A stretch of DNA of 64,000 nt from Heterodontus francisci (taxonomy: Eukaryota), in NCBI RefSeq assembly GCF_036365525.1, contig NC_090399.1, positions 31,218,430 to 31,282,429 on the forward strand. The letters run 5' to 3'. A program made the translations under genes and the position numbers. The notes beneath the pieces are model-generated. The model saw nothing but the letters and a program-made list of their open reading frames with translations, had not been told where the DNA came from and searched no databases. Each line of letters opens with the position of its first letter. Position 1 is the stretch's first letter. Positions 1,995-37,102 of the stretch are shown in pieces.

Positions 1995-2035
1995 CTGATT
2001 TCCAACTCCGGACGAAGGTCCTTCATCACGTTTCT
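1995..2035 (-). CDS. Gene A candidate cytoplasmic exon (41 nt; RNVMKDLRPELEIR or EKRDEGPSSGVGNQ depending on phase)
   Basis: ttttctctctgacacattatacag| acceptor, CAG|gtacat donor. Ends in AATCAG, as does the 45088-45122 exon. Confidence 0.55.
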
Positions 2036-3657: not shown

Positions 3658-3671
3658 GCCAATTTGGGAAG
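3658..3671 (-). CDS. Gene A possible 14-nt micro-exon (ASQIG)
   Basis: ctcccctcag| acceptor and |gtaagt donor. Phase 1 to 0 would link the 63-nt exon to the 41-nt exon in the frame that resembles gene C. Speculative. Confidence 0.3.
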
Positions 3672-4310: not shown

Positions 4311-4373
4311 CTTTGGAATCGTGGAGACTTCCGGTCTTTGTACAAAACATCTTCAGTGATTTCACGTTCCTAT
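4311..4373 (-). CDS. Gene A candidate cytoplasmic exon (DRNVKSLKMFCTKTGSLHDSK)
   Basis: 63-nt phase 1-1 exon with polypyrimidine tract + tttag| and donor AAG|gtaatt; open in the frame set by the TM exon. Confidence 0.6.
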
Positions 4374-4607
4374 CTAAATAATTGGGGGAAATTGAGAGGA
4401 TTAAACGTTGTCATCAATTTCAAAACGAAAACACATACCAACACATGGAAACAGATTTGTTTAATTTCACAATTTGTGATTGCTGAACGTCCATTTGGGG
4501 AAAGTAGAGGATTCAAAAATGTTAGCATAAAGTTGGAGTACTATTTTATAAAAATACAATTGATATGATTACCACAGTTTGAGATAGTATACAAAAACGA
4601 TAAATAC

Positions 4608-4745
4608 CTTTAGTTTTGTTTCTGTAGGAAATGACAGTGGTTATCGCTGAGAATAGCGTCAGCAGAAATAAAGTTGCTATTATAAACAGGGTTGTCTGCA
4701 CATCCATGGAACTACGCGGCTGTTGCGATTGATTTCTCGCTCTCA
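4608..4745 (-). CDS. Gene A exon 3: stalk + uncharged transmembrane helix (VRARNQSQQPRSSMDVQTTLFIIATLFLLTLFSAITTVISYRNKTK)
   Basis: Acceptor ttttcttatcgtag|, donor AAG|gtattt, phase 1-1, in frame with the V exon. About 22 hydrophobic residues followed by basic stop-transfer RNKTK. Confidence 0.82.
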
Positions 4746-5152
4746 CTACGATAAGAAAACAAAGGTTACTTTCTTCTTTCTTAACGCTTGCCTCCTCCCC
4801 CACCATAACTACGTGCTTTAAGTAACACTTTAACCCTTCAAAAGTTAGATGCAAAAATGCTGCATTTGATGAGAGATAATTTGACCCTGACCCATCTGTC
4901 TAGGAACTGGCTTGATCTGGTGAACGCTGGTATTATAACTCGCCGCATTTTACTCGCTGTTAAATTCCATGAAGAATAATACTGATGTGGTGTAAACCGG
5001 AGTTCTATCCTATCCCGTGCATTTCCAGCCCGGCAAGTTATTTTAAATTACACCCGATATTCGTAAATTTAATTTTACTTCAACAGTGAAGTGCTCCCTT
5101 TAATCTATTTTTTAAACAAACTCATAAAACCAACAGCAGGTAACATGCTCAC

Positions 5153-5491
5153 CTGTCACAACAAGTGTTGTTCCTTGCCCATAATATTCACCAGGGGTTA
5201 TAAATTCCACCTTGCAATAATAAGTTCCCGAATCGCGCACTGTCACGTTTGTTAATTGAATCGAAGCCCCAGTCTTTCCGTCGATTTGTTCCCTATTTGG
5301 TCCAATGACTCGGCCTTTGTATTCTGGTGTACTGTTGGAAAGTTCAATTCCACCTCTACTGTTCTTGTACCACTTGCAGGCACCTACTCCCCTAAGTCTC
5401 TCGTACATACAGTACAGAACCGCTATCTTCCCCTCGGTTATATTAATGGATGCCGGGCTTTGAACAACCACAACGTTCTTTGCATTCACTG
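5153..5491 (-). CDS. Gene A exon 2: VJ-type Ig V domain, NKp30/NCR3 family
   Basis: Acceptor cttttacag| and donor G|gtgagc, phase 1-1, 339 nt. B-strand Cys (VLYC), C-strand Trp (KWYK), DSGTYYC and J-like YGQGTTLVV. GIELSNSTPEYKGRV resembles human NKp30 GKEVRNGTPEFRGRL (recalled, not searched). Confidence 0.92.
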
Positions 5492-6752
5492 CTGTAAAAG
5501 AGCATGCAATGTTTCACACTGAAGCCAGAAACTTACGCTGTGCTTAGACGTGTTTGAAATTCCGCTCCTAAAATAAGCATCGCTCACGGAGCGATGCTGA
5601 TGTGCGCTTGTCTCAAGTGCGGTCTTCGATTACGGACATTCATCGACGAAAATAAAGTGATTAACTCTTTCACTATAATAGTGGGCCAATAAGTATCATA
5701 CACAACTTCAGTTTTTTCAAGTATAAGCATAACATTTTTGTTACTTTGATGAAGATTAGGGAGGACATTCATGAAAATGAGCTGATTTATATTTGTAAAC
5801 ATTTGTACCCATCAAATTGCAGTAAAGGTTAAATAGTGCCTTTAAAAGATACATTATATGCGAGTTAATCCTTCCATAGCAATATAGAGCACACAGTGTT
5901 ACATATTACATTTCAAATTGTTATATATTTGAAATTATAGCCAGAAATATGCAGCTTAAAAGCGCACAGAAGAAGTACAGGCGATATAAAAAAATCTTCA
6001 AAATGCACCGCTGTTGTACATAACGTTCTCATGAGCACAATGTCAAGTGCATGCCATTAACAGAAAGAAAGCAATGTGCAGGACTCCAAGATCTAATTGC
6101 AGTCCAATCGCTCAATCGTACAGATAAAGACGTTCTTTAAATGTATTAAATTTCGCTCATCGATTTGATTGTTGTTTTGTTTTTTCAAAGCAATTATGGA
6201 ACTTGCTTCTAAATTTATCTATACTGTGGATAATTTTAGCTTTTCGCTAAGTGTAAAACCGGCGATATCGGATCTGCCGCCAATTATACACCTCCCCTTT
6301 TTTCCTGCTTGAAATGGAAGGAAGATCGGGCGGAGTGCATAATATATCCCCTGTTTGTATTATTGCCAACAGTACATCTTTCTCACTAGGTTCGTGTTCA
6401 ATCTGCTCCAAAATTGTATTAAATAAACATAGCATAATCACGGGCGTACTTGTTTGCTATTTTTCTGAGAAATCGCATGACATAATATTGCATTTAGTAT
6501 TTAAAGTAGATACTGTATTGGTGTAAATCAATTAGTTACGTCGGTCTATCACTGCGGCATTGAGATCACAAGATCCCAATATCAAGTTGCCATCTTTGCA
6601 GAAATAGGTGTCGCCAGTGAAGGACAATTCGTCTCGGAAACCATGGAATAAAGAGGGGAAATCGCTCTTTTATCAGTCCCGATTATTAAGAAAAACAAGA
6701 AATGCTGGAACCACTCAGCAGGTCTGGCAGCATCTGTGGAAAGAGAAGCAGA

Positions 6753-6787
6753 GTTAACGTTTCGGGTCAGTGACCCTTCTTCGGAAC
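6753..6787 (-). ncRNA. Hammerhead-like motif with variant core (CCGAAGA) in the Penelope terminal repeat
   Basis: GTT-CCGAAGA-aGGGTCactGACCC-GAAA-CG-TT-AAC: stems I and II intact, palindromic AACGTT stem III, U4 replaced by C. Confidence 0.5.
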
Positions 6788-7436
6788 AGACAAATATTAA
6801 AAATGTCACAGGTTATAAGCAAGTGAGGTGGGGTGGGGCACGAGATAACAAAGGAGAAGGTGTAGATTGGACAAGGTCACATAGCTGACCAAAAAGTCAT
6901 GGAGCAAAGGCAAAAAATATGTTAACGTTGTGTTGAAAGACAAAGTATTAGTACAGAATAGGTGTCAACGGATTGCATATTGAACAGCAGCAAGTGCAAA
7001 CATGAAAACAAACAGTGGGTAAGCAAACTGAACAAACTAAGATGAAATGAAATAAATGCAAAATAAAGATTGCAAAACATGTAAAAAAGAAAAAAAGAAG
7101 AAAAAAAGAAAAAACAACTAAAATGAAAGTAAAATGGGGGGCTGTCATGCTCTGAAATTATTGAACTCAATGTTCAGTCCGGCAGGCTGTAGTGTGCCTA
7201 ATCGGTAGATGAGATGCTGTTCCTCTAGCTTGCGTTGATGTTCACTGGAACACTGCAGCAATCCCAGGACAGAGATGTGAGCATGAGAGCAGGGGGGAGT
7301 GTTGAAATGGCAAGCAACCGGAAGCTCAGGGTCCTGCTTGCGGACCGAGTGGAGGTGTTCCGCAAAACGGTCACCCAGTCTGCGCTTGGTCTCCCCAATG
7401 TAGAGGAGACCACATTGTGAGCAGCGAATACAGTAT

Positions 7437-10309
7437 TCTTTCTTTTTTTGGGCCTCCTTATCTCGAGAGACAATGGATACGCGCCTGGAGGTGGTCAGTG
7501 GTTTGTGAAGCAGCGCCTGAAGTGGCTATAAAGGCCAATTCTGGAGTGACAGGCTCTTCCACAGGTGCTGCAGAGAAATTTGTTTGTCGGGGCTGTTGCA
7601 CAGTTGGCTCTCCCCTTGCGCCTCTGTCTTTTTTCCTGCCAACTACTAAGTCTCTTCGACTCGCCACAATTTAGCCCTGTCTTTATGGCTGCCCGCCAGC
7701 TCTGGCGAATGCTGGCAACTGACTCCCACGACTTGTGATCAATGTCACAGGATTTCATGTCGCGTTTGCAGACGTCTTTATAGCGGAGACATGGACGGCC
7801 GGTGGGTCTGATAGCAGTGGCGAGCTCGCTGTACAATGTGTCTTTGGGGATCCTGCCATCTTCCATGCGGCTCACATGGCCAAGCCATCTCAAGCGCCGC
7901 TGACTCAGTAGTGTGTATAAGCTGCGGGTGTTGGCCGCTTCAAGGACTTCTGTGTTGGAGATATAGTCCTGCCACCTGATGCCAAGTATTCTCCGAAGGC
8001 AGCGAAGATGGAATGAATTGAGACGTCGCTCTTGGCTGGCATACGTTGTCCAGGCCTCGCTGCCGCAGAGCAAGGTACTGAGGACACAGGCCTGATACAC
8101 TCGGCCTTTTGTGTTCCGTGTCAGTGCGCCATTTTACCACACTCTCTTGGACAGTCTGGACATAGCAGTGGAAGCCTTACCCATGCGCTTGTTGATTTCT
8201 GCATCTAGAGACAGGTTACTGGTGATAGTTGAGCCTAGGTAGGTGAACTCTTGAACCACTTCCGGAGCGTGGTCGCCAATATTGATGGATGGAGCATTTC
8301 TGACGTCCTGCCCCATGATGTTCGTTTTCTTGAGGCTGATGGTTAGGCCAAATTCATTGCAGGCAGCCGCAAACCTGTCGATGAGACTCTGCAGGCACTC
8401 TTCAGTGTGAGATGTTAAAGCAGCATCGTCAGCAAAGAGGAGTTCTCTGATGAGGACTTTCCGTACATTGGACTTCGCTCTTAGACGGGCAAGGTTGAAC
8501 AACCTGCCCCCTGATCTTGTGTGAAGGAAAATTCCTTCTTCAGAGGATTTGAACGCATGTGAAAGCAGCAGGGAGAAGAAAATCCAAAAAAGTGTGGGTG
8601 CGAGAACACAGCCCTGTTTCACACCACTCAGGATAGGAAAGGGCTCTGATGAGGAGCCACCATGTTGAATTGTGCCTTTCATATTGTCACGGAATGAGGT
8701 GATGATACTTAGTAGCTTTGGTGGACATCCGATCTTTTCTAGTCGTCTGAAGAGACCACGTCTGCTGACGAGGTCAAAGGCTTTGGTGAGATCAATGAAA
8801 GCAATGTAGAGGGGCATCTGTTGTTCCCGGCATTTCTCCTGTATCTGACGAAGGGAGAACAGCATGTCAATGGTCGATCTCTCTGCACGAAAGCCACACT
8901 GTGCCTCAGGGTAGACGCGCTCGGCCAGCTTCTGGAGCCTGTTCAGAGCGACTCGAGCAAAGACTTTCCCCACTATGCTGAGCAGGGAGATTCCACGGTA
9001 GCTGTTGCAGTCACCACGGTCACCTTTGTTTTTATAGAGGGTGATGATATTGGCATCACGCATGTCCTGGGGTACTGCTCCCTCGTCCTAGCACAGGCAT
9101 AGCAGTTCATGTAGTGCTGAGAGTATAGCAGGCTTGGCACTCTTGATTATTTCAGGGGTAATACTGTCCTTCCCAGGGGCTTTTCCGCTGGCTAGAGAAT
9201 CAATGGCATCACTGAGTTCCGATTTGGTTGGCTGTATGTCCAGCTCATCCATGACTGGTAGAGGCTGGGCTGCATTGAGGGCAGTCTCAGTGACAGCATT
9301 CTCCCTGGAGTACAGTTCTAGGTAGTGCTCAACCCAGCGGTCCATCTGTTTGCGTTGGTCAGTGATTATGTCCCCCAATTTAGATTTGAGGGGGGCGATC
9401 TTCTTGATGGTTGGCCCAAGAGCTCTCTTCATGCCATCATACATTCCTCTGATGTTTCCGGTGTCTGAGGCCAGCTGAATATGACTGCATAGGTGTTGCC
9501 AGTAGTCATTTGCGCAACACCTAGCTATTCTTTGTGCAGTACTTCTGGCTGCTTTAAGTGCTGCGGATGTTAAATCGCTGGGGGCTTTCTTGTAGTTCAA
9601 CAGTGCAATGCGCTTAGCGGCTATGACAGGTTCCAGCTCTTCATTATGAGATTGAAACCAGTCTGCATTTCTCTTTGCACTTTTGCCGTAGGTGGTCAAA
9701 GCTGACTCATAGATGGCGTCTCTGATGAGGGCCCACTTGGTCTCAGCATCCCCTGTGGGAGTGTTTTGAAGGGCTGTTACAAGTGAATTTAGAAATTTTT
9801 GTAACAGCTGTGGGTGAGAAATTCTGCTCGTGTTGATGCGCGGGTGGCCCTTCTGCTTGGAATGATGCAACTTCTTTGGTCTGAGTCTAACCTTGCTGCA
9901 CACAAGGGAGTGGTCGGTGTCGCAGTCCACACTGTGGAAGCTGCGTGTGATTTGAACACTGTTTAAGGCGGCTCGCCTTGTGACAATGAGGTCTAGCTGG
10001 TGCCAACGACGCGATCTTGGGTGCCTCCATGAAACCTGGTGACAGGGTTTAGTGTGAAAGAACGAGTTGGTGATGCAGAGGTTATGATAGGTACACAACT
10101 CAAGCAGACTCTGCCCGTTCTCATTCATCCTTCCAACGGCATAGCGCCCAAGGCAGGAGGGCCATGAGTCATGGTCGGCCCCAACCCTGGCATTAATGTC
10201 CCCCAGCAGGAATAGGTGTTCGGTGTTGGGGATGCTGCTAATGATGTTATGGAGTTGTTCATAGAACTGGTCTTTAGCTTCAGGTGGGAATCAGAGTGTT
10301 GGAGCATAG
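7437..10309 (-). mobile_element. RTE (BovB-like) LINE, 5'-truncated, young; APE-RT-C2H2 zinc finger
   Basis: ORFs 9088-10128, 8134-9063 and 7495-8100 share one frame, broken only by point stops. Motifs LLGDINARVG, TDHSLV, GVKQGCVLAP, LLFADD and CSTCGRACHSRIGLYSH. A-rich/AAAG tail; AGTAT duplicated at 7432-7436 and 10308-10312. Confidence 0.95.
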
Positions 10310-11482
10310 TATACTACATTGAAAGAAGTACAAGTAAATCTCTTCTTCAACTGAAAGGAGTGTTTCGGGCCTGGGAGAGTGAGGAGAGAGGAGTTAAATG
10401 GGCAGGTATTACACCTCCTGCGATTGCAGGGGAAGGTGCCATGGGATGGGGATGAGGTGGTGGGGGTAATGGAGGAGTGGACCAGGGTGTCACGGAGGAA
10501 ACGATCCCTTCAGAATGCTGACAGGGGAAGGGAGGGGAAGATGCGTTTGGCATCACGCTGGAGGTGGCGGAAATGGCGGAGGATGATCCTTTGGATATGG
10601 AGGCTGATGCGGTGGAAAGTGCAGACAAGGGGAACCCTGTCACGTTTCTGGGAGGGAGGGAAAGGGTAAAGGTACGGGAAATGTGCCGGACACGGTTGAG
10701 GGCCCTGTCTACAACAGTGGGGGGGGGAATCCTCGGTTGAGGAAAAAGGAGGTCATACCAGAAGCACCGTCATGGAAAGTAGCATCATCAGAGTAGATGC
10801 GTCGAAGATGGAGAAATTGGGAGAATGGAATGGAGTCCTTACAGAAGGTAGGGTGTGAAGAAGTGTAGTCGTGGTAGCTGTAGGAGTCGGTGGGCTTATA
10901 ATGGATATTAGTAGACAACCTAACCCCAGAGATAGAGACAGAGAAGTCGAGGAAGGGAAGGGAAGTGTCAGAGATGGACCATGTAAAGGTGAGAGAAGGG
11001 TGGAAATTGGAAGCAAAGTTGATAAAGTTTTCCAGTTCGGGGCAGGAGCAGGAAACGGCACCGAAACAGTTATCAATGTACCGGAAAAAGAGTTGGGGAG
11101 GGGGCCTGAGTCGGACTGGAACAAAGAATGCTCGACATATCTCACAAAAGACAGGCATAACTAGGTTATAACCGATTATTAATGGTAGGCTGTGCACTTG
11201 TGTGGACCTCTAGTGAAGACGAATCGAGCTGGGCTATGAACATCTGGAGTGGGTACTCACTGCGCTGTAAGAAAATGATGGGCACTTGGATAACAATGGT
11301 ACATCCACATCTAATGGCAGGATAGAACAGAACTGAAGGGGTAAAATTACACCCTCTAGTAACTAACTGAACTGAAATGAAATGTTATATGTCAAGTTGA
11401 TAGCATGTGTAAGTGAAATAGAATTCATGGGTTACCATGTGTTTCGCTTTATATCAACAAGTAAATTAATGAAACTACTTAC

Positions 11483-11525
11483 CAAAGACAAGAGTCACAA
11501 TCCAGAGTCTGAGACTGGAAACCAT
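11483..11525 (-). CDS. Gene A (NKp30/NCR3-like receptor) exon 1: signal peptide MVSSLRLWIVTLVF
   Basis: ATG at 11525 in context aggATGG; 14 mostly hydrophobic codons + 1 nt, then strong donor G|gtaagt. Phase 1 joins the V exon to give ...LVF-AVNAKNVVVVQSP. Confidence 0.8.
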
Positions 11526-11599
11526 CCTTTCCGTCGATAATTTTACTTCTAAATAATTCGCGGGACTAATGGCAGAAGGTTAAAATTCATTTCTTTATA

Positions 11600-11680
11600 A
11601 TGATGGAGCCGACAGGAAATGACGCAATGGAAAACAGCAGGCGATATTTTTTCTGTATTGGCAGAAACTTCGGACGTGGT
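11600..11680. promoter_or_regulatory. Putative promoter of gene A: ETS + CRE/CEBP-like + NFAT motif cluster
   Basis: ACAGGAAATGACGCAATGGAAAA at 11612-11634, about 90-110 bp upstream of the gene A ATG, plus ATTGG (CCAAT on minus strand) near 11657. Motif-level evidence only. Confidence 0.4.
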
Positions 11681-12999
11681 CAATGTTTCCAGCAAACTGA
11701 GGTTTTCAGATCTTTGCACTCTCAAGCATCTGAACTGAAGCTCCGATGAGGAAATGGTTGTGAACAACGGCGAAAATTCCGTTTGATATCAGCAAGTCAA
11801 GCCAATATGAAACAACTACATATCAAAGAGTATCCAGATATCGGGACGAGAAATCATTCTTTCTATGAGGTCAGTGCAACGAAATTGCGCCCATTAATAT
11901 TTCCCAAGGATAAAGAGACCTGGTTAATACTGGAATTCTGGAACAAGGAATAGAAAAATACATGGAATTACCCAGTGGAGCTATGAACATTTAAAGAAAA
12001 AAACAGATTAACATTTCAGGTAGGGCCATCTATTTGAAAATCAGTGAGCCTAATTTAAACTTTTGGCAGGAGTGTGAAACGGGCGATCCGTTACAAGTCT
12101 CTCGCAACTTCCAGAAAGAAACATCAGATGAGGTGAATAATGGGGGTGGGGTTCGCATTTGCCTGCTTTATACTTTTACATAAAGTTTAGCTTTTTTGTT
12201 GGTAAGTATCAGTTTTGATGAGTTTATCGCACTGAGGGGGAAATTTTCACTTTGACCGATGGTGTAAAACAGGCTGAGAGGACCCGGGCTCTCTTTTGTT
12301 ACTTTTTTCTTTTTAAAAAAAATAATTGTAGAAACTCTTACTAAATGTTTTTTTATATTTCTACCTAGCTTTTTTTCATGCTCTAATTTCTCCCACCTTT
12401 TTCAAAAATCATTCACTTCTGGTTTTTGAAATCTGTCCAATCTTCCGATCTACAACTAATCTTCGCAGAATCTTACACTTTTTCTTTCAATTTTTTATTT
12501 GATTATCTGTTTCGACTGTTAATTTTTGGATTCCTTGGCTTTTTATGTCTCAGTTTCATAATGAATCAACAATAGTTACAAAGATGTGTGTGCAAGACCA
12601 GTAAATCAAACGGCCCATATTTAATAAGTAAAAATAGCTTCAGTAAAAGACTTGATAAAGAAGCAAGATCCATCAGATGTCAATTAACGTAGGCTGTCAA
12701 GGATCTGTAGTCATATGTAGAATCTCAAATTAATTCAAAGCCGACCTCAAATACAGATATTTCTGCCCAAGAAACTAATAACATCAAAGGAACTCGGAAC
12801 TAACATGCCTCTGTAATTGCCCCATCCCTCTGCTGCATTAATGTTCCACTGTTTATATTGGATTGATATTTGCTGGATGACTTCAGGTGCTTGGGTAATT
12901 TTCTCTGGCATTTGCATGTAGTCCACGGCAAGTATGTATAGAAACATTTCCTGTACTGGGCATCTCCAGCTAAGTCCCGATTATATTCGGAAAGAACTT

Positions 13000-15475
13000 A
13001 TTTTACTATTCCATAAAACTGCTAACTCTGGTTGAGCTGACAACTGCCGTCAGTTCCTTCGACACAAGTAAAACTCTCAGAAGCGACAGCTTACAGGTCA
13101 TGTTGTATTCGGCTCTGTGGGATTGGATCGGCCCAGAACTGCTGGAAGTGTACGAGAGACTGCTTCTGGACACAAGCATGTCAGAATCCACGATGAAAGC
13201 ATCATCACCCTCATCTACAAGGAAAAGAGGGAGGAAATCAGACATTGGTGGCCCCTCTCACTGTTTAATGTGTCCAAGGTCATCGGCCGTCGGGTCAAGT
13301 GTGCTTAGAAGTTGGTGATTCACCCCGATCAGACCTGCACTGCACCCTCACACTACTCAAGCATACGCTCGCCTCTGTACGGGACATGGGGGTGGACACT
13401 TGCCTCATCAGCTTTGACCAGGAGAAGGCCTTTGACAGGATATTGCACATCTAGATGATGGACATGCTCTCCAAAATTGGGTTTGGGGGAGGGAATCCTC
13501 AATTGAACCCAACTGCTCTACACAACCATTCGTAGTGCAGTTTCACTCAATAAATGGATGGGAATTAGAAGGTTTTCCAATCAAATCTGGAGTCAGACAG
13601 GGCCGTCCCCTCTCTTCTGTCTTGTTCATTTGCTGATGTGTGCATAAGAGGGGTGACAATCCCAGGGAGCAGAGGCACTCAGGTCAACGTTTCCCTGCCC
13701 ATGAATGATATTGCTGTTTCTGCTCAGATCCATTGACAGTTCGCAGACTTTTGAGCGTCTGTGACCAGTTCGAACTGGTCTTGGGAGCCAAAATAAATTG
13801 CAGCAAGAGTAAGGCCATGTGATTTTAACATTAGGTCAGACTGCTTGAAGGTGCTAGGCAAATGGTTTGGAGAGACTGGGCCATGTGCCAAAAACTGGAA
13901 GGAGGAGCAGTCATCATAAACAGAAATTAAGCATTGGGAATGGTGCTCCCTTTTCCATTGCGGGTAAGAACCGGGTCATTAGATGTTGCTGTACGTGGTG
14001 AGGTCTGGCCCATACCCCACCCTTGCACTGTGCCAGTCACCTGAGCCATCTTCCACTTTATCTGAAGATCGAAATCCATATTGACACGATATTCGAACCT
14101 CCAGATAAAGGAGGAAAACCCGGACCCAACGTCACCCTAATGCTGATGGCCACTATTTTGTACAGCTGTGCCCCAGTATGCAAAATACTAATTTGCTGAG
14201 GTTCTTTCTGCCTTCGGTGTTGCAAAGGATGGGTTTAGCTACGTTGCCCTGGAATGCTCCATTCAGTTGGACTGTCCCATACCCCTGTCCCTGGTGGAAA
14301 CGTTTGTGCAGAAAACAACCTAGACCACTAATCCATCAGCACATAGCGTCCTCAAGGCCCTGTGGGAAAAGGAGATGGGAAATTCTGTCAGATGGTCCCC
14401 GGAGCGGACTGTCAAACTCATTTGACATAATGCCTCATTTCCAGAACATTCAAACAAGCACCAATACATAGCTTGGGTGGCAGTGAGGAGGACTCTCCCC
14501 GTCAGAGCCTTCCTGCACGCCCAGAGGCTCACTGTCTCGACACACTGCCCTCGAGGTGGCTGTGCGGGTAAGAGACCATCACCCACTTCCTTCTGGACTG
14601 TGCTTTCACAAAGCAGGTCTAGAAAGAGATGCAGTGTTTTTGTCAAGGTTCATTCTGAACAGCTCCATAATGCAGTGCTCAGTGCTCTGTAGGTTGTTTC
14701 TAGACAGACACACTGAGATAAACATCAACTGCTGCTGGAGGACGATCTATTGAGTGAAAGGTACCCTTTGGTCTGCCCAAAACTAGCTGGTTTTCCTGTG
14801 CAAAGAGCTGTCCACTGGTTCTTTACAAGGTCCAGGACTATGTGCTGAGAGACGCACTGAAGCTTGGGGTAGCCATTTCAAAGGCTCAATGGAGAAAGAT
14901 CACGGTGTAAGGTCTTCCCACAATCGTATACCAAGGGGCTAGAAACCTATAAAATCCCTCTGCTTGTCTGAACCAGGGAATGTTTAAGGTATGTAATGCA
15001 AATGTACATTGTAATCATGCCAGTAATGGCAAGGATAGCAAGGGCGGCACAGTGGCGAGCACCGCAACCTCACAGTTCCAGCTACCCGGGTTCGGTTCTG
15101 GGTCCTGCCTGTGTGGAGTTTGCAAGCTCTCCCTGTGACTGCGTGGGCTTCTGTCGAGTGCTCCGGTTTCCTCCCACAAAGACTTGCAAATTGATTTTTA
15201 AGTTGCACCTAGTGTAGATAGGTGGTAGGAGAATGGTGGGGATGTGCTAGGGCACATGAGATTAATATAGGATTAGTATAAATAGGTGTTTGTTGGTCGG
15301 CACAGACTCGGTGGGCCGAAGGGACTGTTTCAGTGCCGGATCTCTCTCTGACCTCATGTACTGTGCTGAAAGAAACTGATCTGCATTGTACTCTACTAAA
15401 TGTCCAATTTGAGTTGTTTTGTGATGTATCTTAATTTTTTATGAATAATGCATATTTTTGGGGAAAAAATAAAAC
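13000..15475 (+). mobile_element. Degenerate Tx1/L1-clade LINE
   Basis: RT remnants LYSALWDWIGPELLEVY, ITLIYK...WWPLSL, DQEKAFD, SGVRQGRPLS; 3' region with LPVRAFLHA and CPRGGC; A-rich tail near 15470. Confidence 0.8.
15041..15350 (+). mobile_element. tRNA-derived V-SINE (HE1-like) inserted in the Tx1 3' UTR
   Basis: GGGCGGCACAGTGG head, B-box-like GGTTCG, V-domain tgtgtggagtttgca...ggtttcctcccaca, CR1-like tail gggccgaaggg. Confidence 0.85.
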
Positions 15476-18400
15476 TACGAGCAGACCAAATCTTCACGCC
15501 ATGATCACGATGGTCCCATTTATATTTTAATACACGCATAAAGTCAGTGTTTGCACAATATAGTTTTTTCCCTGAAAATAATGATGGTTGGTACGTTGCA
15601 TTTTTCACGTGATGTCGCTAAGGCATTATCGAGTACATTTCCGACTTACCACCCAGGCGTAAAACTGAAATTGCGCATCAATTGCCTGCAACAGACACAA
15701 TTTACATTTCCATTGAATTGTTACTTTTCATCTAGTGCTGCACTGAAAAATTAACTTGTCCATCTTCACCACGGATGATGATTAGTCAACTCAATGTTTC
15801 GAGTGTTTCTGTTTTACTTTGAGCTTTCCAACACCTGCCAAGTGTTTGTATTTTTCTCCGTATTACATACAGCCAATTTTGCAAACAAACTGAAGTTAAT
15901 GGCACTGGCCCGCAACTTTAGGTTTTTTTTTCCAGCAGTAAAACCGCATTCAACATCGAACTAAAGCAAAATATATAAAAGCTGCAACTACGTGCAAACT
16001 TTCAAGGTTGCAATAACACTGACCCAGCTACCGATCTCCAGGACATCTGATGTCTGACGGGCACTGCAAAACTAAACTTGAGATTTTAAAATACAAACCT
16101 AGATCTTCTTTGTTCATGAAGATTACTTTACGATAATTCTATTCTTACTTTTATTTAAATAAGATATTGAACGATTCAACTGAAGTACAAGGTGAATAAT
16201 TCGCAGTTAATTCAATATTTGAGAACCGACTGCGAGAACTAAGGAATCATTTAGCGTGAATACACCTCTTGTGAATACAATCCGCTCCATCACGAGAGAT
16301 ACCAGCGAGGAAAGCCCATCCAGTCTCACTCATTCAAAAAGATGCTGGGGCTTTTATGAACCAAAACATTCAATTATCAATGATTCCAGGAGATTGGTTT
16401 CCAGTAACTCACCCAGAAGCTCATTCATCGTTAATGATCAGTCCATTTAAATTACACATGATAAATATAAATGTGCATTGTAAAATGCGTACAATGAGAA
16501 ACATTTCCCCAGACAAGTAAATTACAAGTAAGCAAAAAATATAGCTATATATACATATAGATATTTATCTCCCGGCACTGCAAGTCTCCAAGAATATTCT
16601 GTCTTTGGGTTTAACCAGTAATTCATAACTTTATGACACACTAACGTCCGTATCAAGTAACATTAGCAATACTTTTTTTTCATTTCTAACTTAATCTAAC
16701 ATGAGCCTTGGTTCTGCTTTAGATTCTCAGGATGAAAAGTGCCCCTTTGCCATTTGGGACAGTTAACCCTGTGGCCGCATAAAAGTTTGGATGAAAAAGG
16801 CCAATCATCTAAACAATTCCACTCTCTCAGTACTAGACAATCAACGGTGGTTAAATGTTGCCGTCAGGAATGCTATTGAACTTCACACTGTTACTTCAAA
16901 CATTGCACCAGTGTATTTGGACGCGAGCACCTAGCAATGAAATATACAAAGGCTTCACAGAATACATTTGCGCATGTAAATTTCTGACATTAACGTTAGT
17001 GGGAAATATGTGACTCTGCAAGTTTATGCGCAGCACAAAAAAGGACAGGAGTCTGACCCGAACCTGTTCGGTTCTGGAACGGGTTCGTTTATCATCTGAG
17101 CACTTTATACCTGCATAAAAAACATAAACAACAGAGGCTGCTTTTAAAATGAATGTGTTAACTTTGTCAGGACTTTGTCAGGACACCGTGGAGTAAGTTT
17201 CAACTTTCGCTGAGGGTGTGAAGCTTGTGCTATCGGTTCCTTCTGCACCGCTTTACTTCCTCCCTTGCACCCCACCCAGCACAAACTCCCAACCGCACAT
17301 AGTTCCTCCTTTTTTATGATACAGGTCAAATTTTTTGAATGAGAGCATATAACGGAATATGAAGTGCAAAATTTAATCTTTGCAGCACAAAACACTTAAA
17401 TGAGTAAAAATGTATTATATTACAATGAGCATATGTCATGATAAACGCAGACTAACGGCTTTGAGGAATTAGCACACTCACCCAAGAATCCATTACAATG
17501 GCTGGTGCACTAACAGAGCTAGTGGGAAGAATTTTCAACTTAACACCCGGACCAAAAACTGACCTTGCTGATTCGGTGTCCGTTATAGCAACAACCTGAT
17601 ATTCATTACTACAACAATGGGAATGAAAATCGGTCTGTTTCGCTCCTGGGGGTGCGAAGGAGGTGGGGTAGAAATTTGCCTCAGGCGGTGGCTGTAGTAG
17701 AACTGAATATCAAACACTGCTCATAAAAGCCAGTCCATCCAATACCACAGGTTTTGCACCAGCATGCGAGCCACATTCTTACCCCGAGAGAGCGGGAGAT
17801 TCGCTCTACAGAGATAAGTTTGACTGTTGGTCATAGTTAAAAATGGACGGTATGGAAATAGCCATAGATTATAAACAACGCATTACTTCCATCCCATTGA
17901 GGTCAACGAGTGTTAAAAGCAGGCGGAGTGTGTAATGGAAGGCCACTACGCCTATTTTGCACTCTCACGCAAAGCTAAAATTAATCCCCCTCTACAAGTG
18001 TTGATGGTGAAATTATTCCCTGTGTGGTTAAGTGCAAAGTAGCTGGACAAGTATTGCTGCTCTGCTTTATTTTTAGCAACCTTGATTTCAACTGTTAGCT
18101 GTTTGAATTAACATAAATACAGTTTTGGCATGATGGTGTGCTCTCACAATAAGTGAATCCTCTGATATTTGAACATTGAAGAGACAGAGACATGTGTGGC
18201 ACATACAGAATGGCTTTCACCTTCACAGCTTGAATGTAATTTCTCCTTTTCGAATTTTGCCCATTTATTTCAGCTCTTTCTCCAATTTCATTACTACAGG
18301 AAGAATGAATCCAATCTGCATCCTGTGGATATTAATTCCACTCTCTAGTAAGTAGATATCTCATTTTTTTTCCATTCGTTATAATCACCCGGATGTGTCC

Positions 18401-19302
18401 ACCTCGTATCTAGAAATACCTATTCATGTTCCAGTATTTTTATTAGAACTTAGGACTATCTGGAGACTTCCATCCTGTATTCGGATTTTCCGTCTCTCAC
18501 AGGTACTTTGGTGGGGGGTGGGGGGCTGGTGGGTCGGGGGGTGGAATTGGACATAACCTAGGATTCAAAATAAGGCGTAAGCATGAGTCTCACGTTATAC
18601 GCCCCTCCTGAAATTCAATTTTGTTGAATTTTATGGAACTCAGTATCGAGTACATCGTATAACGAGCGGTAAAAGCGATTCCACCCGGAGTGCATCATCA
18701 GTCATGTCCAATTTCATCTCCAGTATATTCAATCTGCACTCTATGCCAATTTTTGTCCTCTGATGTCCTAAACATCTCTAAACACTGGAATGCAAATCAT
18801 ATTGCTTATAGATTTGCCCCTGGCTTTGAGATCGACCGCTCGTGATAGAAACACGCCTGATCTTCAAATGCATTAAAATCAATTGAATGAAATTGGTCTT
18901 GCACGGTAGCACAAAATGGACAATAGAAAATCGTAGCCAGATTTACGTCTTGCCTGATTTTCTTCTGCAATAACTTCAGCGGGAAAGAAAAACAAGTGCC
19001 AAAACCAATTGTGCCCCAAATGGGCTGAAAATCAGGCACGTTCTCTCGCAAGCGATGGATTCACTCCACCAAGCAATGAACATGGAGCATTAACCTCTAG
19101 TAATCCATAAAACTGGACATGTGAGTTATTCATGCAGATTTTAAAAAACTTTAATGTTTACATTTTAACGATAGAAAAACAACAGCACAGATTAATTCCC
19201 GAATAAAAAGAGTGGTGAGCGAACTAGTATATTACTTGCATTGGGATAGAATTTTAGCTTTCCGCTAGGCAGAAGTCTGGCATAGCGAAGTTGCTACCGG
19301 GA

Positions 19303-19345
19303 ATGGATTTCAGGTTGGCAGTCTACAGCAGCAGTGCAATACTGA
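19303..19345 (+). CDS. Gene B possible leader exon (MDFRLAVYSSSAIL)
   Basis: Same length (43 nt) and phase as the gene A leader, with a |gtaagg donor. Only weakly hydrophobic, so the true leader may lie elsewhere. Confidence 0.2.
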
Positions 19346-19509
19346 GTAAGGCAAGATTTTTATTCCCAGCAATTCTTGCTGAGGTGGTCACATTTATTCA
19401 AAGTTTAATCGGTGTAAAATCTTGGAATGGTCAAATGTTCCCATACAGGACTCTCTCAAAGTTCCAACTTCCAACCAGAAACCAGAGACATTTTTTTTCT
19501 GATTTCCAG

Positions 19510-19851
19510 GAATTAACGCCAAGAAGTTCACAGTTATTCAAACGGTGCCCAGGATTCTGACAGAGGAAGGGCAGACAGTTTTCCTCCCCTGTACCTACAC
19601 AGCCAACCTCTCCAATGTGATAGGAGCTTATAGCTGGTACAAGGACGGCAGAAATGGCACAGAGGTTTACAACAAGACAGCAGAGTACAAAGGACGGATC
19701 TACAGACACAAAGAGGATTTCTTTCATGCCAGAGATGCGTCCATACTAATAAAGGATGTGAGAGTGAACGATTCCGGGGTGTATTACTGCAAAGTGCGAC
19801 TGATGCAACTGGGCGAGGAATATGGAGCAGGAACAAAACTCACTGTGAGAG
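19510..19851 (+). CDS. NCR3: Gene B V exon: NKp30 (NCR3) VJ-type Ig domain
   Basis: Acceptor ttttttctgatttccag|, donor AG|gtaaat, phase 1-1, 342 nt. PRILTEEGQTVFLPC...WYK...GTEVYNKTAEYKGR...DVRVNDSGVYYCKV...LGEEYGAGTKLTV aligns by eye along its whole length with human NKp30 (PEIRTLEGSSAFLPC...GKEVRNGTPEFRGR...DVRGHDASIYVCRV...LGVGTGNGTRLVV, recalled). Confidence 0.92.
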
Positions 19852-20229
19852 GTAAATGATTCTCCTGCCTGCAATATCGTGCAACTGATGGTTAGGAGAG
19901 CCGGTCCCATAGTGTTGTGCCTCTTTCTCCGACAGGCGTGGGTCTGCCCAGAACGGCTGCTATGTGGTAAATGTCGATTGAGGAGGCAACTGAATCATCA
20001 AAAATAACGAATTACTGACCAGGCGTGAATTTGACTTGGCGACAATGCAACTCAATGGCCTTTTACAACCATGCCTGAAATTCAGCTCTACTGCAACAGA
20101 ATATCGGGTGGGCCGTATAATTGGCGGCTGATGCCACATGACTTGTTTTGCATTGCTGTTGAAGAGCAATGTAACCGTCATGGTGGGTGGGGATGGGGTA
20201 AAATTACATAGCCCCTGACAATGGGCTTG

Positions 20230-21524
20230 CAATGCGCAAAAATAGACTCCAGGATGGTATGTTGCCTCCCTGGTGCTAGGGTCAAGGATGTCTCTGAGCA
20301 GCTGCAGGACATTATGAAGGGGGAGGGTGAGCAGCCAGAGGTCGTGGTCCATATTGTTGCTAACGGCATAGGCAGGAAGAGAGATGAGGTCCTGCAAACT
20401 GAATATAGGGAGATAGGGAGAAGGTTAAAAAGCAGGAGCTCTAAGGTTGTAATCTCAGGATTCCCCCTGTGCCACGTGCAAGTGAGGGCAGGAATAGGAG
20501 GATTAGGCAAATGAATGTGTGGCCGAAGAGCTGGTGTAGGTGGGAGGGCTTCAGCTACTTGGATCATTGGGATCTCTTCTGGTGCAGAGGTGACCTGTAC
20601 AAGAAGGACGGGTGGCATTTAAACTGGAGGGAGACGAATATCCTTGCGGGAAAGTTTGCTAGTACTATTCTGGAGGGTTTAAACTAGTCTTGAAAGGGGG
20701 TGGGACCCAAAGTTGTAGTCTCTCCGATGAGATAGTTGAGGCAAATGTAGAGGTTAAAGCAAGCAAGTCCAGTAGGCAAGCCGGGCAGGGGCACGACAGG
20801 GAGCGTGGAAGGTCTGGTAGGCTAAATTGCATTTACTTTAATGCACGAAGACTTACAGGTAAGGCAGATGAACTCAGAGCATGGAATGGTACATGGGATT
20901 GTGGTATTATAGCTATTACGGAAACGTGGTTGAGGGATGGGCAGGACTGGCAGCTCAATGTTTCGGGGTACCAATCCTTCAGGCATGACACATTTGGAGG
21001 TAAGAGAGGAGGGGGAGTTGCACTATTGATTAGGGAGGTCATCACGGCAGTACTTAGGCAGGATATCCCGGGGGGAATGTCCAGTGAGGCCATATGGATA
21101 GAACTAAGAAATATGAAAGGGGTGATCACTTTGATGGGATTATACTATAGGCCTCCCAATAGTCAGGGGGAAGTGGAGGAGCACATATGTAGGGAAATCA
21201 CAGATAGGTGTAGGGATTATCGGGTTGTAATAGTAGGTGATTTTAACTTCCCTAATATTGACTGGGAATTTTCTGAAGCAGTATGTGGATGGCCCTACTA
21301 GAGAAGGGGCTACACTCGACCTCCTCTTAGGAAATGAGGATGGGCAGGTGGTTGATGTGTCAGTGGGGGAGCACTTTGGGACCAGTGACCATAATTCTAT
21401 TAGCTTCAAGATATTTATGGAAAAGGATAGGACTGGTCCTCTGTTTGAAGTCATAAATTGGGGGAAGGCTAATTTAGATGGCATCAGACAGGAACTCGCA
21501 AAAGTTGAATGGGAGAGGCTGTTT
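20230..21524 (+). mobile_element. CR1 LINE fragment (ORF1 esterase end + APE endonuclease), 3'-truncated
   Basis: CCLPGARVKD...VVVHIVANG, IYFNARRL, AITETWL, GGGVALLI, GDFNFP, SDHNSI. Confidence 0.88.
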
Positions 21525-24500
21525 AGAGCAGCGAGAGCGGCGGCAGCGAGAGCGGGAACAGGCGAGAAGAGCCGGGAGATAAAAGGAGCCGAAGCCAGAG
21601 ACCAGAAGCAGCAGCAAGAGCGCTCCGTTCTGCTCTGTGGACCTGCTTGATCAGCAAAAATTGAAGTGTGACGTCACAGGAGAGCTGCTAAGTGATTGGT
21701 GGATATTTCTTTCTTGCATTTGAGCAGCGGGAGCGGTGAGAGCGCGAGCCAGGAGGCAGCCGGGAAGGTAAGTTGAGCTAGAAAGTACTTACCTCGTGAT
21801 TCGGCGGACGCAGACACGGGGACTGCTGGGTAAGTGAAGTTATATATTCGGGCAGTGACTAAACCCTAAACACTAAACGTGAAGTGTCTCGCACCCATCC
21901 TCCTCCTATAACCAAAAAAAAGGACTCTTGTGTGGAGGGTTTGGTAAGGTAAGGTTCTCCTTTATTTTTTTAATCTCTTTTGTCAATTTAGAGCGGAGGG
22001 GATCGAAGCTAGGGCAGTTGCATGCTCCTCTTGCAGCATGTGGGAGGTAAGCGTCACCACTGGTGTCCCTGCTGACTTCACCTGTGAGAAGTGCATCCAA
22101 CTCCAGCTCCTCACAGACCACGTTAGGGAACTGGAGCTGGAGCTGGATGAACTTCGGATCATTCAGGAGGCTGAGGGGGTGATAGAGAGCAGTTATAGGG
22201 AAGTAGTGACACCTAAGTTACAGGATAAAGGTAGCTGAGTGACCGTCAGGGGAGAGAAAGAGAATAGGCGCGCAGTGCAGGGATCCCCTGTGGCTGTTCC
22301 CCTCAATAATAAGTATACCATTTTGGATACGGTTGGGGATATGACCTACCAGGGGAAAGCCACAGCGGCCAGGTCTCTGGCACTGATCCTGGCTCTGTGG
22401 CTCAGAAGGGAAGGGGGGAGAATAGGAGAGCGATAGTGATAGGAGATTCAATGGTTAGAGGAACAGGCAGGAGATACTGTGGTCGCGAACGAGACTCCCG
22501 GATGGTATGTTGCCTCCCAGGTGCCAGGATGTGGGATGTCTCAGATCGAGTCTACAGGATTTTTAAGGGGGAGGGGGAGCAGCCAGAAGTCGTGGTACAC
22601 ATCGGCCCCAATGACATAGCTAGGAAAAGGGATGAGGACCTGAAAAGCGAATATAGGGTGTTAGGTTGGAAGCTGAAAGGCAGGACGAGCAGAGTAGTAA
22701 TCTCAGGGTTGATACTGGTGCCACGTGCTAGTGAGGCGAGAAACAGAGAGCGAGTGCAGCTGAACACGTGGCTACAGAGCTGGTGTAGGAAGGAGGGCTT
22801 CAGATAGGTGGATCATTGGGATACCTTCTGGGGAAGGTGGGACCTGTACAAGAAGGACGGGTTGATTCTGAACTGGAGGGGCACCAATATCCTGGGCGGG
22901 AGGTTTGCTAGAGCGCTTCGGGAGGGTTTAAACTAGTTTGGCAGGCGGATGGGAACCGGAGCTACGGATCAGTGGATGGGGTAACTGTTGAACAGGCAGA
23001 TTCAGAGTGCAGAGAGTCTGTGAGGAAGGTTAGACAGTTGACAGGGCAAAGTTGCAGCCAGTATGATGGGTTGAAGTGTGTCTATTTTAACGCAAGAAGT
23101 GTCAAAAATAAGGGTGATGAACTTAGAGCATGGATCAGTACTTGGAGCTACGATGTTGTGGCCATTACGGAGACTTGGATATCACAGGGGCAGGAATGGA
23201 TGTTGGATGTTCCGGGGTTTAGATGTTTCAAAAGGAATAGGGAGGGAGGTAAAAGAGGTGGGGGAGTGGCATTGCTAATCAGGGATAGTATCACAGCTGC
23301 AGAAAGGGAGGTCGTCGAGGAGGGTTTGTCTACTGAGTCAGTATGGGTGGACGTCAGAAACAGGAAAGGAGCAGTCACTTTATTGGGAGTTTTCTATAGA
23401 CCCCCCCATTCGCAACAGAGACATGGAGGAACAGATTGGGAGGCAGATTCTGGAAAGGTGCAGAAGTAACAGGGTTGTTGTCATGCTTGACTTCAATTTC
23501 CCTAATTTTGATTGGAACCTCCTTAGTGCAAATAGTTTGGATGGAGCAGATTTTGTCAGGTATGTCCAGGAAGAATTCCTGACTCAATATGTAGATAGGC
23601 CGACTAGACGGGAGGCTATGTTGGATTCGGTGCTTGGTTACGAACCAGGCCAGGTGGCAGATCTCTCGGTGGGAGAGCATTTCAGTAATAGCGATGACAA
23701 CTCCCTGACCCTTACTATGGTCATGGAGAGGGATAGGAGCAGACGGGTTAGGAAAATATTTAATTGGGGGAGGGGGAATTACAATGCTATTAGGCAGGAA
23801 CTGGGGAGCATAAATTGGGAACAGATGTTCTTCGGGAAATGCACGATAGAAATGTGGAGGTTGTTTAGGGAGCACTTGCTGCGACTGCTGGATAGGTTTG
23901 TCCCGATGAGGCAAGGAAGGGATGGTAGGGTGAAGGAACATTGGATGACAAGAGATTTGGAACAGCTAGTCAAGAGGAAGAAGGAAGCTTACTTAACGTT
24001 GAGGAAGCAAGGATCAGAAAGTGCTCCAGAGGGTTACAAGGTAGCCAGGAAGGAACTGAAGAATGGACTTAGGAGAGTTAGAAGGGGACATGAAAAAGTC
24101 TTGGCGGGTAGGATTAAGGAAGATCCCAAGGCGTTCTACACTTATGACAGGAACAAGAGGATGGCCAGAGTGAGGGTAGGGCCGATCAGGGATAGTGGAG
24201 GGAACTTGTGCCTGGAGACGGAGGAGGTAGGGGAGGTCCTTAAAAAATACTTTGCTTCAGTATTCACCAATGAGAAGGACCTTGTCGTTTGTGAGGACAG
24301 CGTGAAATAGGCTGATATGCTCGAACAGGTTGATGTTAAGAAGGAGGATGTGCTGGAAATTTTGAAAGAATTGAGGATAGATAAGTCCTCGGGGCCAGAC
24401 GGGATATACCCAAGGTTATTAAGGGAAGCGAGGGAAGTGATTGCCGCGCCTTTGGCGATGATCTTTGCATCCTCACTGTCCACTGGAGTAGTACCAGATG

Positions 24501-25934
24501 ATTGGAGGGTGGCAAATGTTGTTCCCTTGTTCAAGAAAGGGAATAGGGATCACCCTGGGAATTACAGACCAGTCAGTCTTACGTCGGTAGTGGGCAAATT
24601 ATTGGAGAGGATTCTGAGAGACAGGATGTATGATTATTTGGAAAAGCATATTTTGATTAGAGATAGTCAGCATGGTTTTGTGAGGGGCAGGTCATGCCTC
24701 ACAAGCCTTATTGAATTCTTTGAGGATGTGACAAAACACATTGATGAAGGAAGAGCAGTGGATATGGTGTATATGGATTTTAGCAAGGCGTTTGATAAGG
24801 TTCCCAATGGTAGGCTCATTCAGAAAGTAAGGAGGCATGGGATACAGGGAAATCTGGCTGTCTGGATACAGAATTGGCTGGCCCATAGAAGGCAGAGGGT
24901 GGTAGTAGATGGAAAGTATTCAGCATGGAGCTCGGTGACCAGTGGTGTTCCGCAGGGATCTGTTCTGGGACCTCTGCTCTTTGTGAGTTTTATAAATGAC
25001 TTGGATGAGTAAGTGGAAGGCTGGGTTAGTAAGTTTGCCGATGACACGAAGCTTGCTGGAGTTGTGGATAGTGTGGAGGGCTGTTGTAGGTTGCAACAGG
25101 ACAGTGACAGGATGCAGAGCTGGGCTGAGAAGTGGCAGATGGAGTTCAACCTGGAAAATTGTGAAGTGATTCATTTTGGAAGGTCGACTTTGAATGCGGA
25201 TTACAGGCTTAAAGACAGGATTTTTGGCAATGTGGAGGAACAGAGGGAACTTGGGGTCCACGTCCATAGATCCCTCAAAGTTGCCACCCAAGTTGATAGG
25301 GTTGTTAAGAAGGCATAAGGGGTGTTGGCTTTCATTAACAGGGGAATTGAGTTTATGAGCTGCGAGGTTATGCTGCAGCTCTATAAAGCTCTGGTTAGAC
25401 CTCACTTGGAATATTGTGTTCAGTTCTGGTCGCCTCATTATAGGAAGGATGTGGAAGCTTTGGAGAGTGTGCATAGGAGATTTACCAGGATGCTGCCTGG
25501 ACTGGAGGGCATGTCTTATGAAGAAAGGTTGAGGGAGCTAGGGCTGTTCTCATTGGAGCGAAGAAGGATGAGAGGTGACTTGATAGAGGTGTACAAGATG
25601 ATGAGAGGCATAGATAGAGTGGATAGCCAGAGACTTTTTCACAGGGCGGAAAGGGCTATCACCAGGGGTGATTGGAGGAAGGTTTAGGGGAGATGTCAGA
25701 GGTAGGTTCTTTACACAGAGATGGTGGGTGCGTGGAATGCACTGCCAGCGGTGGTAGTAGAAGCAGATACATTGGGTATATTTAAGCGACTCTTGGATAG
25801 GTACATGGATAATAGTAGAATTAAAGGGTATGTAGGTAGTTTGATCTTAGAGTAGGTTGAAGGGTCGGTACAACATCGTGGGCAGAAGGACCTGTACTGT
25901 GCTGTACGGTTCTATGTTCTCTGTTCTATGTTCT
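21525..25934 (+). mobile_element. Near full-length CR1 LINE (5'UTR, ORF1 ZnF/zipper/SGNH esterase, ORF2 APE-RT) in the gene B V-TM intron
   Basis: ORF1 CEKCIQLQLL...LELELDEL and IVIGDSMVR; ORF2 APE motifs, [18 protein letters not shown]; few stops or frameshifts; (TTCTATG)n tail. Confidence 0.95.
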
Positions 25935-26064
25935 AAAATTGCCCTGTGATCTGCAGAGCCGATTCATTATCGCCCATATTGTGTTCCCGACCAAAATCGC
26001 AGAGCCAGGCAGCAGCTGAGAATAAGAACGATGCCGTTATCGACTTTTGACTTGTTCTCCGTAG

Positions 26065-26154
26065 GTTCTTTGAGTGCAAATACAGTTCTGTATATTGTAC
26101 GAGGAGTGGTTGTAATCACAACGATCATCAGTATTTTATTCTGGAGAATGGGAG
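26065..26154 (+). CDS. NCR3: Gene B transmembrane exon with TM arginine (GSLSANTVLYIVRGVVVITTIISILFWRMG)
   Basis: cttgttctccgtag| acceptor, GAG|gtaaga donor, 90 nt, phase 1-1, in frame with the V exon. TVLYIVR parallels human NKp30 TVLLLR. Confidence 0.85.
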
Positions 26155-26931
26155 GTAAGATTATTCAATGTCTTTTCAGTAAATAGTCGATAGATCTGAA
26201 TTGAAAATGTTCTTTCTGAATGTTGCCATCATTGAAGTGACAGATGACACGGGATAGTACAATTCACTCCTTACACGGTCCGATAACAGCGCATGCATAT
26301 GTTCACATTTGTCTGAAATTGCTTCGCCCTCACTTTAGAGGAGCAATTATCCTGTTGAAAATAAATGGCTTAATAGTTCCTGTAAAAGGCAAAGGAAAAA
26401 CAGTTCAGACGAACACCTAACATATTAAGCAGTCCAGGTGTAATTTCAGTCTGGAATCTCCCCACCTATACGGTACTTTTCTCAAACAATGCACTCCAGC
26501 AGCAACTTGAAAGATAGCTGTCTATTGTTTTCAGGTGACTTTTCCATTGCCCACATTCGCTTGCGTTTCACAATGACTGGGTCACATTGCGACCTGAGGA
26601 CTGGACGTTCATCTCGGGTCGTGGTGCTAAATGAGTGGAATAGATTGGCCGTTTGTTCCACACAGCACCGAATACTTAGTTCCATTGCCGTCAATAGATA
26701 TCAGACGCTGCGTATAACTGGCAGCCAATCCGATATCGCCCAATTTACGCCACTGCCTGAGATGAATTTCCAACCGTTATTGCCAAATTAGGAATTGCTT
26801 AATGTTATTTACTGTTTAAAACATTTCAATTTAGAAGTCACGTTGTGTTGTGAATATATAAAACATTTGAAATACTAAGGTTAATATAGCTAATATGATT
26901 CTGTATTTTTGACTAGCTTGCCGATTTTATG

Positions 26932-36371: not shown

Positions 36372-37102
36372 TGGTAGCTGTACAAAGGCTAGTTGTTTGT
36401 TTTACAAAAGGATATTAAAAATAAACTGGAACAGCACCACAAGGTCTGACATCATACCAGATTTGCTGCTGCGTTTAAACCCGAAGATTAGCTCCAAGAC
36501 AGATCTTCATTGCTGCATTTGCTCAGCAGCTCAGCACACTGGTCAGAATCTGTTCCATTTTCCAGTGTAAATTATGAAAAAAAGTGTAATACCCTCAATT
36601 CGGTTAAGCTGAATACTGCTAAAAGTGCTGCTGCTTAATGCCATCGTATAAATTTCAAGGTTAACACAAAGTATCAAGTAGTTTTATTTTAATTACCAAC
36701 TTCACCAACAAGTCGATAATTGTTTCTACATTTTAATTATGGTGGCAGAATCTGGTCTGAAGTACACCAGGAGACTCCATACGACTCTGTGTGTATAGCC
36801 CTGGAGTTTGCATTATCCGTACTCCGGTATGCTCTTTCTAAGACGTCTGGGTGACCACAAAATATACATTGTTAAATTGTTTGCTTACTTAGCCAATGTC
36901 CAATTTGGAGGAGGTAGTGACAGTCATGATTGACAGTTACTGTCATGCATATTTATACAAAAAAATCATTATGAACAGATTGTAGAAATGCCACAAGATC
37001 ACCAGATCGCTGTGAGGTGAAAAGGACGTTTTATCACATCTGATCTCCTCCCTCTTTAATATCATCTCTACAACATTCCCATAGCAGTATCCAGCTGTTC
37101 TC

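Follow-up and report, generated by a model that had tools for sequence, protein, structure and literature searches.

The locus described here raises two questions: whether the NKp30 type of variable (V) domain, encoded by NCR3 in mammals, is wired to opposite signals by two adjacent genes of the horn shark (Heterodontus francisci), and whether these genes form a matched pair. To our knowledge, no natural-killer receptor other than NKp30 can be followed from shark to human, and its mammalian form is solely activating. The stretch analysed (NC_090399.1, forward-strand positions 31,218,430 to 31,282,429), referred to at its full 64 kb as the window, is vertebrate DNA rich in long interspersed nuclear elements (LINEs). 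It holds two divergent V genes arranged head to head, gene A on the minus strand and gene B on the plus strand. Our analysis indicates that A and B are probably adjacent, divergent members of a horn shark NCR3 multigene cluster with opposite predicted signalling, and that they are neighbours rather than a matched pair. Gene A is already annotated in RefSeq and the shark NCR3 family is already published; gene B is probably an unannotated gene with an arginine in its transmembrane segment (Arg-TM).

Each gene has one VJ-type V exon (Table 1), and the window contains no further V exons of the same kind. This layout had been recognised in a preliminary description of the same DNA, and the motifs quoted there were all recovered in both V exons (ELSNSTPEYKGR, DSGTYYCKV and EYYGQGT in gene A; EVYNKTAEYKGR, DSGVYYCKV and EEYGAGT in gene B). 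Both are single, non-rearranging V-set exons with a J-like end, a G-x-G-T-x-L-x-V motif closing each V domain (YGQGTTLVV in A, YGAGTKLTV in B). In a pattern scan of the window, leader exons of the family type with strong donors numbered only two, one belonging to each gene. The span originally given for the two genes, 4608-26154, is too short for gene A, which extends to 1995 and on beyond the left edge of the window. The motif 'YKGR' occurs a third time at 46957, where it was rejected as a chance match within a retroelement frame. No marker of the major histocompatibility complex was found in the 64-kb window.

Comparison of the V domains supports the assignment of both genes to the NCR3/NKp30 family, as had been proposed. 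A profile of the two V exons was searched against 1.8 billion representative proteins, and the named single-V proteins looked up among the hits were all NCR3 or NCR3-like. These named relatives span elephant shark, nurse shark (two published sequences), bamboo shark, lungfish, sturgeon, reedfish, frogs, newt and horse. Against solved structures, the gene B V domain matched human NCR3 best (1e-17), nine orders of magnitude ahead of the next match (2.8e-8). A fold search with an AlphaFold2 model of the gene A V domain (predicted local distance difference test score, pLDDT, 90.5) placed NKp30 structures first. V-domain identity to human NKp30 is about 30%. Together with the shark-only profile described below for gene A, these comparisons place both V domains closer to NCR3 than to other V families. 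A basic TM residue is present in gene B and absent from gene A; since the published nurse shark set has a member with an uncharged TM, such a residue does not define the shark family.

Gene A corresponds to XP_067865380/381, named "natural cytotoxicity triggering receptor 3-like" in RefSeq. Isoform X2 (XP_067865381.1, here P0005), which was retrieved by the profile search, has 264 amino acids and isoform X1 (P0151) has one extra Ala. The exons found in the window are 100% identical to P0005, the leader exon matching residues 1-14 in tblastn. After ...GVGNQ, P0005 goes on with ANEDDNVQYSALNVNEREEKRRSSVDKDKTNEADNVQYCTLTFNEGKQNNRSSDDKK (the join reading ...GNQ followed by ANEDDNVQYSAL...), a stretch with no match in the window, and two exons carrying ITIMs (immunoreceptor tyrosine-based inhibitory motifs) must therefore lie to the left of the window start. 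The protein has two canonical ITIMs, VQYSAL (Tyr 216) and VQYCTL (Tyr 245), which agree with the consensus (S/I/V/L)xYxx(I/V/L) and, at 29 residues apart, with the usual spacing of about 25-30 residues between two such motifs. Their tyrosines are the sole cytoplasmic tyrosines in a tail of about 95 residues. Because there are two ITIMs and no other cytoplasmic tyrosine, gene A is predicted to be an inhibitory receptor and not merely a non-activating one. The uncharged TM and longer stalk described earlier for gene A are confirmed, and the tail makes the case stronger than was claimed. White shark P0015 and horn shark P0011 share this ITIM tail module.

The gene A transcript was recovered as contigs from public runs of one sample (runs X1, X2 and X3), spliced gene A being present in two of the three runs and not present in run X3. 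That these runs are RNA is a guess, and the reading is safe because three introns have been cleanly removed. The splices join 5153/4745, 4608/4373 and 4311/2035, all with GT..AG borders on the minus strand. The exon at 4745-4608, on whose use the preliminary description depended, is thereby seen joined on both sides, and its proposal of a multi-exon tail is likewise upheld by the last two splices. A 49-base contig match at exon 5 consists of 41 bases of exon (2035..1995) and 8 bases that nearly match the next exon. The contig extends a further 142 bases on the 5' side of the V exon and about 320 bases on the 3' side of exon 5, and both extensions fall outside 819-6800. A terminal exon at 819-932, the basis of a di-leucine idea in the earlier tail model, was rejected: it has zero contig depth, is absent from the RefSeq protein, and both the RefSeq and RNA models use other exons.

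Several smaller features of gene A were seen alongside its transcript. A tandem NAGNAG acceptor (cag/cag) at 5488-5493 on the minus strand allows the V exon to start at 5491 (isoform X1) or 5488 (isoform X2), which accounts for the single Ala, at the predicted signal-peptide junction, that separates the isoforms. Like isoform X1, the RNA contig takes the upstream site (contig pieces 5153-5492 and 5153-5489). Position 5226 is T in the window but C in the contigs of runs X1 and X2; the difference falls in a Gly codon of the V exon, is synonymous and is probably allelic. Intron 1 also has unspliced contigs at 5599-6507, probably pre-mRNA, whose depth of 4-6 is low beside the 20 of the spliced contig. 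Very high contig depth in all three runs at 2619-3218, 3419-3618 and 6619-6800 marks transcribed high-copy repeats in the gene A introns. On the minus strand a TATAAA at 11593-11598 precedes the gene A start codon by about 70 bases, and the RNA contig appears to extend about 99 bases 5' beyond the ATG, past the position of the TATAAA.

The leader, V and TM exons of gene B are open and their splice sites are canonical, including two strong donors. The predicted leader resembles the leaders of homologues (MNPSPILWIL and MSPSPILWIL), and the V exon retains 10 of the 10 columns that are invariant in a 24-sequence family alignment. The TM arginine reported earlier was read in the last of these exons: it is the fifth residue of LYIVRGVVVITTIISILFW, in the outer part of the segment, as in horse NCR3 and sturgeon NCR3-like. 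Unspliced read-through of this exon would reach a TAG stop at 26184-26186, and an AATAAA lies at 26360. One close parallel is an uncharacterized basking shark protein (XP_078422539.1, here P0022; LOC144695539), whose B-type V domain is 64% identical to that of gene B and is likewise followed by an Arg-TM (LHIVRGVIIITMIIAIFFW against LYIVRGVVVITTIISILFW). Its Arg-TM segment matches the gene B exon with 55% identity over 29 residues (E 3.5e-6). It differs from gene B in its longer stalk and in a 50-residue tail that has no counterpart in the window. The combination of a B-type V domain with an Arg-TM in horn shark and basking shark means that it is conserved between two shark orders.

Whether A and B are a pair was judged from their V domains, which share 45% identity (E 4e-27). 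A maximum-likelihood tree of 40 V domains, midpoint-rooted and without a non-NCR3 outgroup, splits the rows of cartilaginous fish from those of bony vertebrates. The gene A clade (support 100/99) includes white shark P0015, with an ITIM tail, and bamboo shark P0004, with an Arg TM; its sister group (90/92) is the clade that contains the nurse shark NCR3 sequence QTT61898, so that the V-domain phylogeny suggested in the preliminary description sets gene A next to published shark NCR3. The stalk/TM exons of P0004 and gene A are homologous (z 7.6), an Arg in the former standing in place of an Ala in the latter. Gene B falls in a different clade (95/79), shared with catshark P0003, the Arg-TM protein P0022 of basking shark, and P0011, P0013 and P0001 of horn shark; its end branch is short (0.11) and its V domain is 76-77% identical to those of the three horn shark proteins. 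The TMs of these three have no basic residue, and P0011 and P0013, which have a single V domain, carry ITIM tails. From these placements, A and B belong to different old V lineages, both older than the split of these shark orders, and each lineage holds Arg-TM and ITIM forms somewhere among sharks.

The preliminary description had taken A and B as a matched activating/non-activating pair, perhaps co-regulated from their shared intergenic region and competing for one B7H6-type ligand. The head-to-head order and the opposite TM and tail logic of the two genes suit this proposal, and the opposite logic itself is supported, but the matched, co-regulated and competing unit is not. Classical paired receptors have near-identical ectodomains, whereas A and B differ at more than half of their V positions and lie in separate old lineages; the ITIM-tailed horn shark genes nearest to gene B are better candidates for its inhibitory counterpart. 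The start codons of A and B are 6.8 kb apart, which argues against the intergenic region being a compact two-way promoter, and nothing supports a compact promoter shared by the two genes. Run X3 lacks gene A although it comes from the same sample as the other runs. Nor does the level of V identity favour competition between A and B for B7H6-type ligands. We regard a matched pair as quite improbable.

A bolder version of the neighbouring-receptor reading is that the head-to-head unit, its ITIM gene on the minus and its Arg-TM gene on the plus strand, would be an ancient block of the shark NCR3 cluster that was duplicated repeatedly, in which both V lineages have switched forms and gene B is a working activating receptor missed by annotation. 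We put this forward tentatively and think it rather doubtful. Two further observations concern relatives of gene B that lie outside the window. P0013 and P0001 have a Glu inside the TM (LFISAAVEVGILLIV, LFISAAGEIGIFLIV), which is unusual for inhibitory receptors. The horn shark proteins P0001 and P0153, named 'turtle homolog B-like' in RefSeq, have three tandem B-type V domains; they are either genuine receptors with several V domains or adjacent genes fused in the model.

On the reading of A and B as neighbouring receptors of opposite predicted sign, gene A encodes a type I membrane protein, in which a single NKp30-like V domain is followed by a stalk of 17 residues, an uncharged TM and a two-ITIM tail. 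Binding of a ligand would lead to phosphorylation of the ITIMs and recruitment of an SHP-type phosphatase, and the cell would be damped. In gene B, the TM Arg may pair with the Asp of a CD3zeta/FcRgamma-type adaptor that bears an ITAM (immunoreceptor tyrosine-based activation motif), and the cell would be activated. The role of the TM Arg in mammalian NKp30 is described in PMC6514059.

Several observations weigh against this reading. When the gene A V domain alone is compared with solved structures, V domains of SIRP and of antibody (single-chain variable fragment, scFv) score nearly equal to NCR3. A shark-only profile of the gene A clade and its sister clade (A3, which replaced a family profile, A2, that includes horse NCR3 and is not independent) puts NCR3 (1.5e-20) ahead of SIRP beta (2.2e-17), a margin of about three orders of magnitude. 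The ITIM exons of gene A are outside the window and are based on the RefSeq model and the unplaced 3' bases of the RNA contig. Gene B is known here from DNA sequence alone, and its V-to-TM intron is occupied by 5.5 kb of LINE in the sense orientation. An annotated protein for gene B was not found in word-based searches of annotated proteins of 62-450 residues, which may miss proteins. A downstream cytoplasmic exon of gene B was not recognised, the tails of other Arg/Lys-TM proteins having no significant match at 26.1-36.5 kb. A 2014 survey dates the origin of the FcR gamma chain to bony fish (PMC4016189), which makes the adaptor of gene B in sharks uncertain.

The structure matches of gene A could be taken to mean that its lineage merely resembles NCR3 and consists of inhibitory receptors of a SIRP-like or another VJ type. 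Several members of the horn shark cluster are indeed named 'signal-regulatory protein beta-like' in RefSeq, and the V-domain tree lacks an outgroup that might separate such a lineage. RefSeq calls gene A itself NCR3-like, however, and the match between A and B is far above the match of either to SIRP. The sister relationship of the gene A clade to the nurse shark NCR3 clade also argues against a SIRP-like origin, as does the first rank of human NKp30 in both the shark-only profile and the fold search. Gene A moreover has a single V domain, without the C1 domains of SIRPs. An origin outside NCR3 is therefore very unlikely.

The points concerning gene B could instead indicate a silent or decaying relic, in which case gene A would be the only working gene, an inhibitory NCR3-like gene beside a dead activating copy. 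The protein searches used the gene B V exon, basking shark P0022 and residues 1-135 of P0011 as queries; the Arg-TM protein of basking shark yielded no gene B protein, and the P0011 query matched eight proteins, the gene B product not being among them. The next gene rightward has decayed tail exons with in-frame stops, and decay therefore does occur in the cluster. However, the three gene B exons are open with canonical splice sites, every family-invariant V residue is kept and the end branch is short. Gene A is spliced correctly even though its intron 1 holds a comparable LINE in the sense orientation, and searches that rely on shared words could miss a protein. A relic is unlikely on this evidence; we retain gene B as a predicted activating, putatively expressed neighbour of gene A.

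Among known systems, mammalian NKp30 is the best sequence and fold match of both V domains and has the same one-exon VJ-type V; it further shares with gene B the short stalk, the outer TM Arg and the leader/V/TM exon plan. Mammals have one gene, which is activating only, whereas the horn shark has a cluster in which gene A has no TM charge and two ITIMs. KIR, SIRP alpha/beta and PILR resemble the horn shark genes in combining, within one cluster, members that have an ITIM tail and an uncharged TM with others whose tail is short and whose TM has a basic residue. In such systems activating forms usually arise from inhibitory ones by TM point changes, such as that between P0004 Arg and gene A Ala. 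The ectodomains of the classical pairs are nearly identical, unlike those of A and B. In the nurse shark, NCR3 is a diverged multigene family, reportedly that of Kinlein et al. 2021 (Immunogenetics 73:333; GenBank MT914154-914161). The two members retrieved here (QTT61898 and QTT61904) have one Lys-TM and one uncharged TM between them and are not close orthologues of A or B. Eight nurse shark NCR3 genes are cited in PMC12227049. A literature search on ITIM and TM features of shark NKp30 found nothing useful, the primary nurse shark description lying outside that search.

The introns of A and B hold LINE retroelements (Table 1), one of them in the 6-kb intron 1 of gene A. The intergenic region between A and B showed only two short repeats in self-comparison, and its small open reading frames (ORFs) had no Pfam match. 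Further to the right, a third NCR3-like gene with a long tail lies on the minus strand (tail exons 36455-36562, 44304-44453, 45076-45156 and 52842-53012). Its V exon must be beyond the window end. Two of its tail exons contain an in-frame TAA, at 44378..44376 and 36490..36488, the former occupying the site of the ITIM tyrosine of paralogues (WVQ-stop-ATI against WIQYATI). It has the appearance of an inhibitory tail that is truncated or in decay.

Table 1. Exons of genes A and B and LINEs within their introns; coordinates count from the first letter of the window.
Feature	Coordinates	Strand	Details
Gene A leader exon, coding part	11483..11525	-	MVSSLRLWIVTLVF plus one base; donor G/GTAAGT; 5' untranslated region upstream
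Gene A V exon	5153..5491	-	AG acceptor, GT donor; phase 1 at both ends; Pfam V-set E 4.4e-12
Gene A stalk and TM exon	4608..4745	-	17-residue stalk RARNQSQQPRSSMDVQT; uncharged TM TLFIIATLFLLTLFSAITTVISY; then RNKTK; 100% match to XP_067865381.1
Gene A cytoplasmic exon 4	4311..4373	-	DRNVKSLKMFCTKTGSLHDSK; RNA joints on both sides; 100% tblastn match
Gene A cytoplasmic exon 5	1995..2035	-	EKRDEGPSSGVGNQ; donor CAG/GTACAT; RNA joint 2035/4311
Gene B leader exon, predicted	18305..18347	+	MNPICILWILIPLS plus one base; donor A/GTAAGT; pattern scan
Gene B V exon	19510..19851	+	AG acceptor, GT donor; phase 1 at both ends; Pfam V-set E 1e-14
Gene B short stalk and Arg-TM exon	26065..26154	+	GSLSANTV; LYIVRGVVVITTIISILFW; then RMG; AG acceptor, donor GTAAGA at 26155
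LINE in gene A intron 1	7200..11200	-	Same orientation as gene; RVT_1 2.1e-34 at 8137-9063; long minus-strand ORFs
LINE copies in gene B intron 2	20200..25700	+	Gene-sense; endonuclease and RVT_1 at 20690-21298, 23423-24307, 24317-25009

The practical gains of this analysis are modest, consisting of a corrected tail for gene A relative to the earlier model and a probably unannotated Arg-TM gene. For the family they concern, the horn shark has the NKp30 type of V domain wired both to an ITIM tail, in the transcribed gene A, and to an Arg-TM, in gene B, whose arrangement is conserved in basking shark. If gene B is expressed, the locus would provide an inhibitory and activating set in which ancient balanced signalling on the NKp30 axis could be tested. 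Should the head-to-head unit prove to be old and duplicated, paired-receptor logic on the NKp30/B7H6 axis would have been present at the base of the jawed vertebrates.

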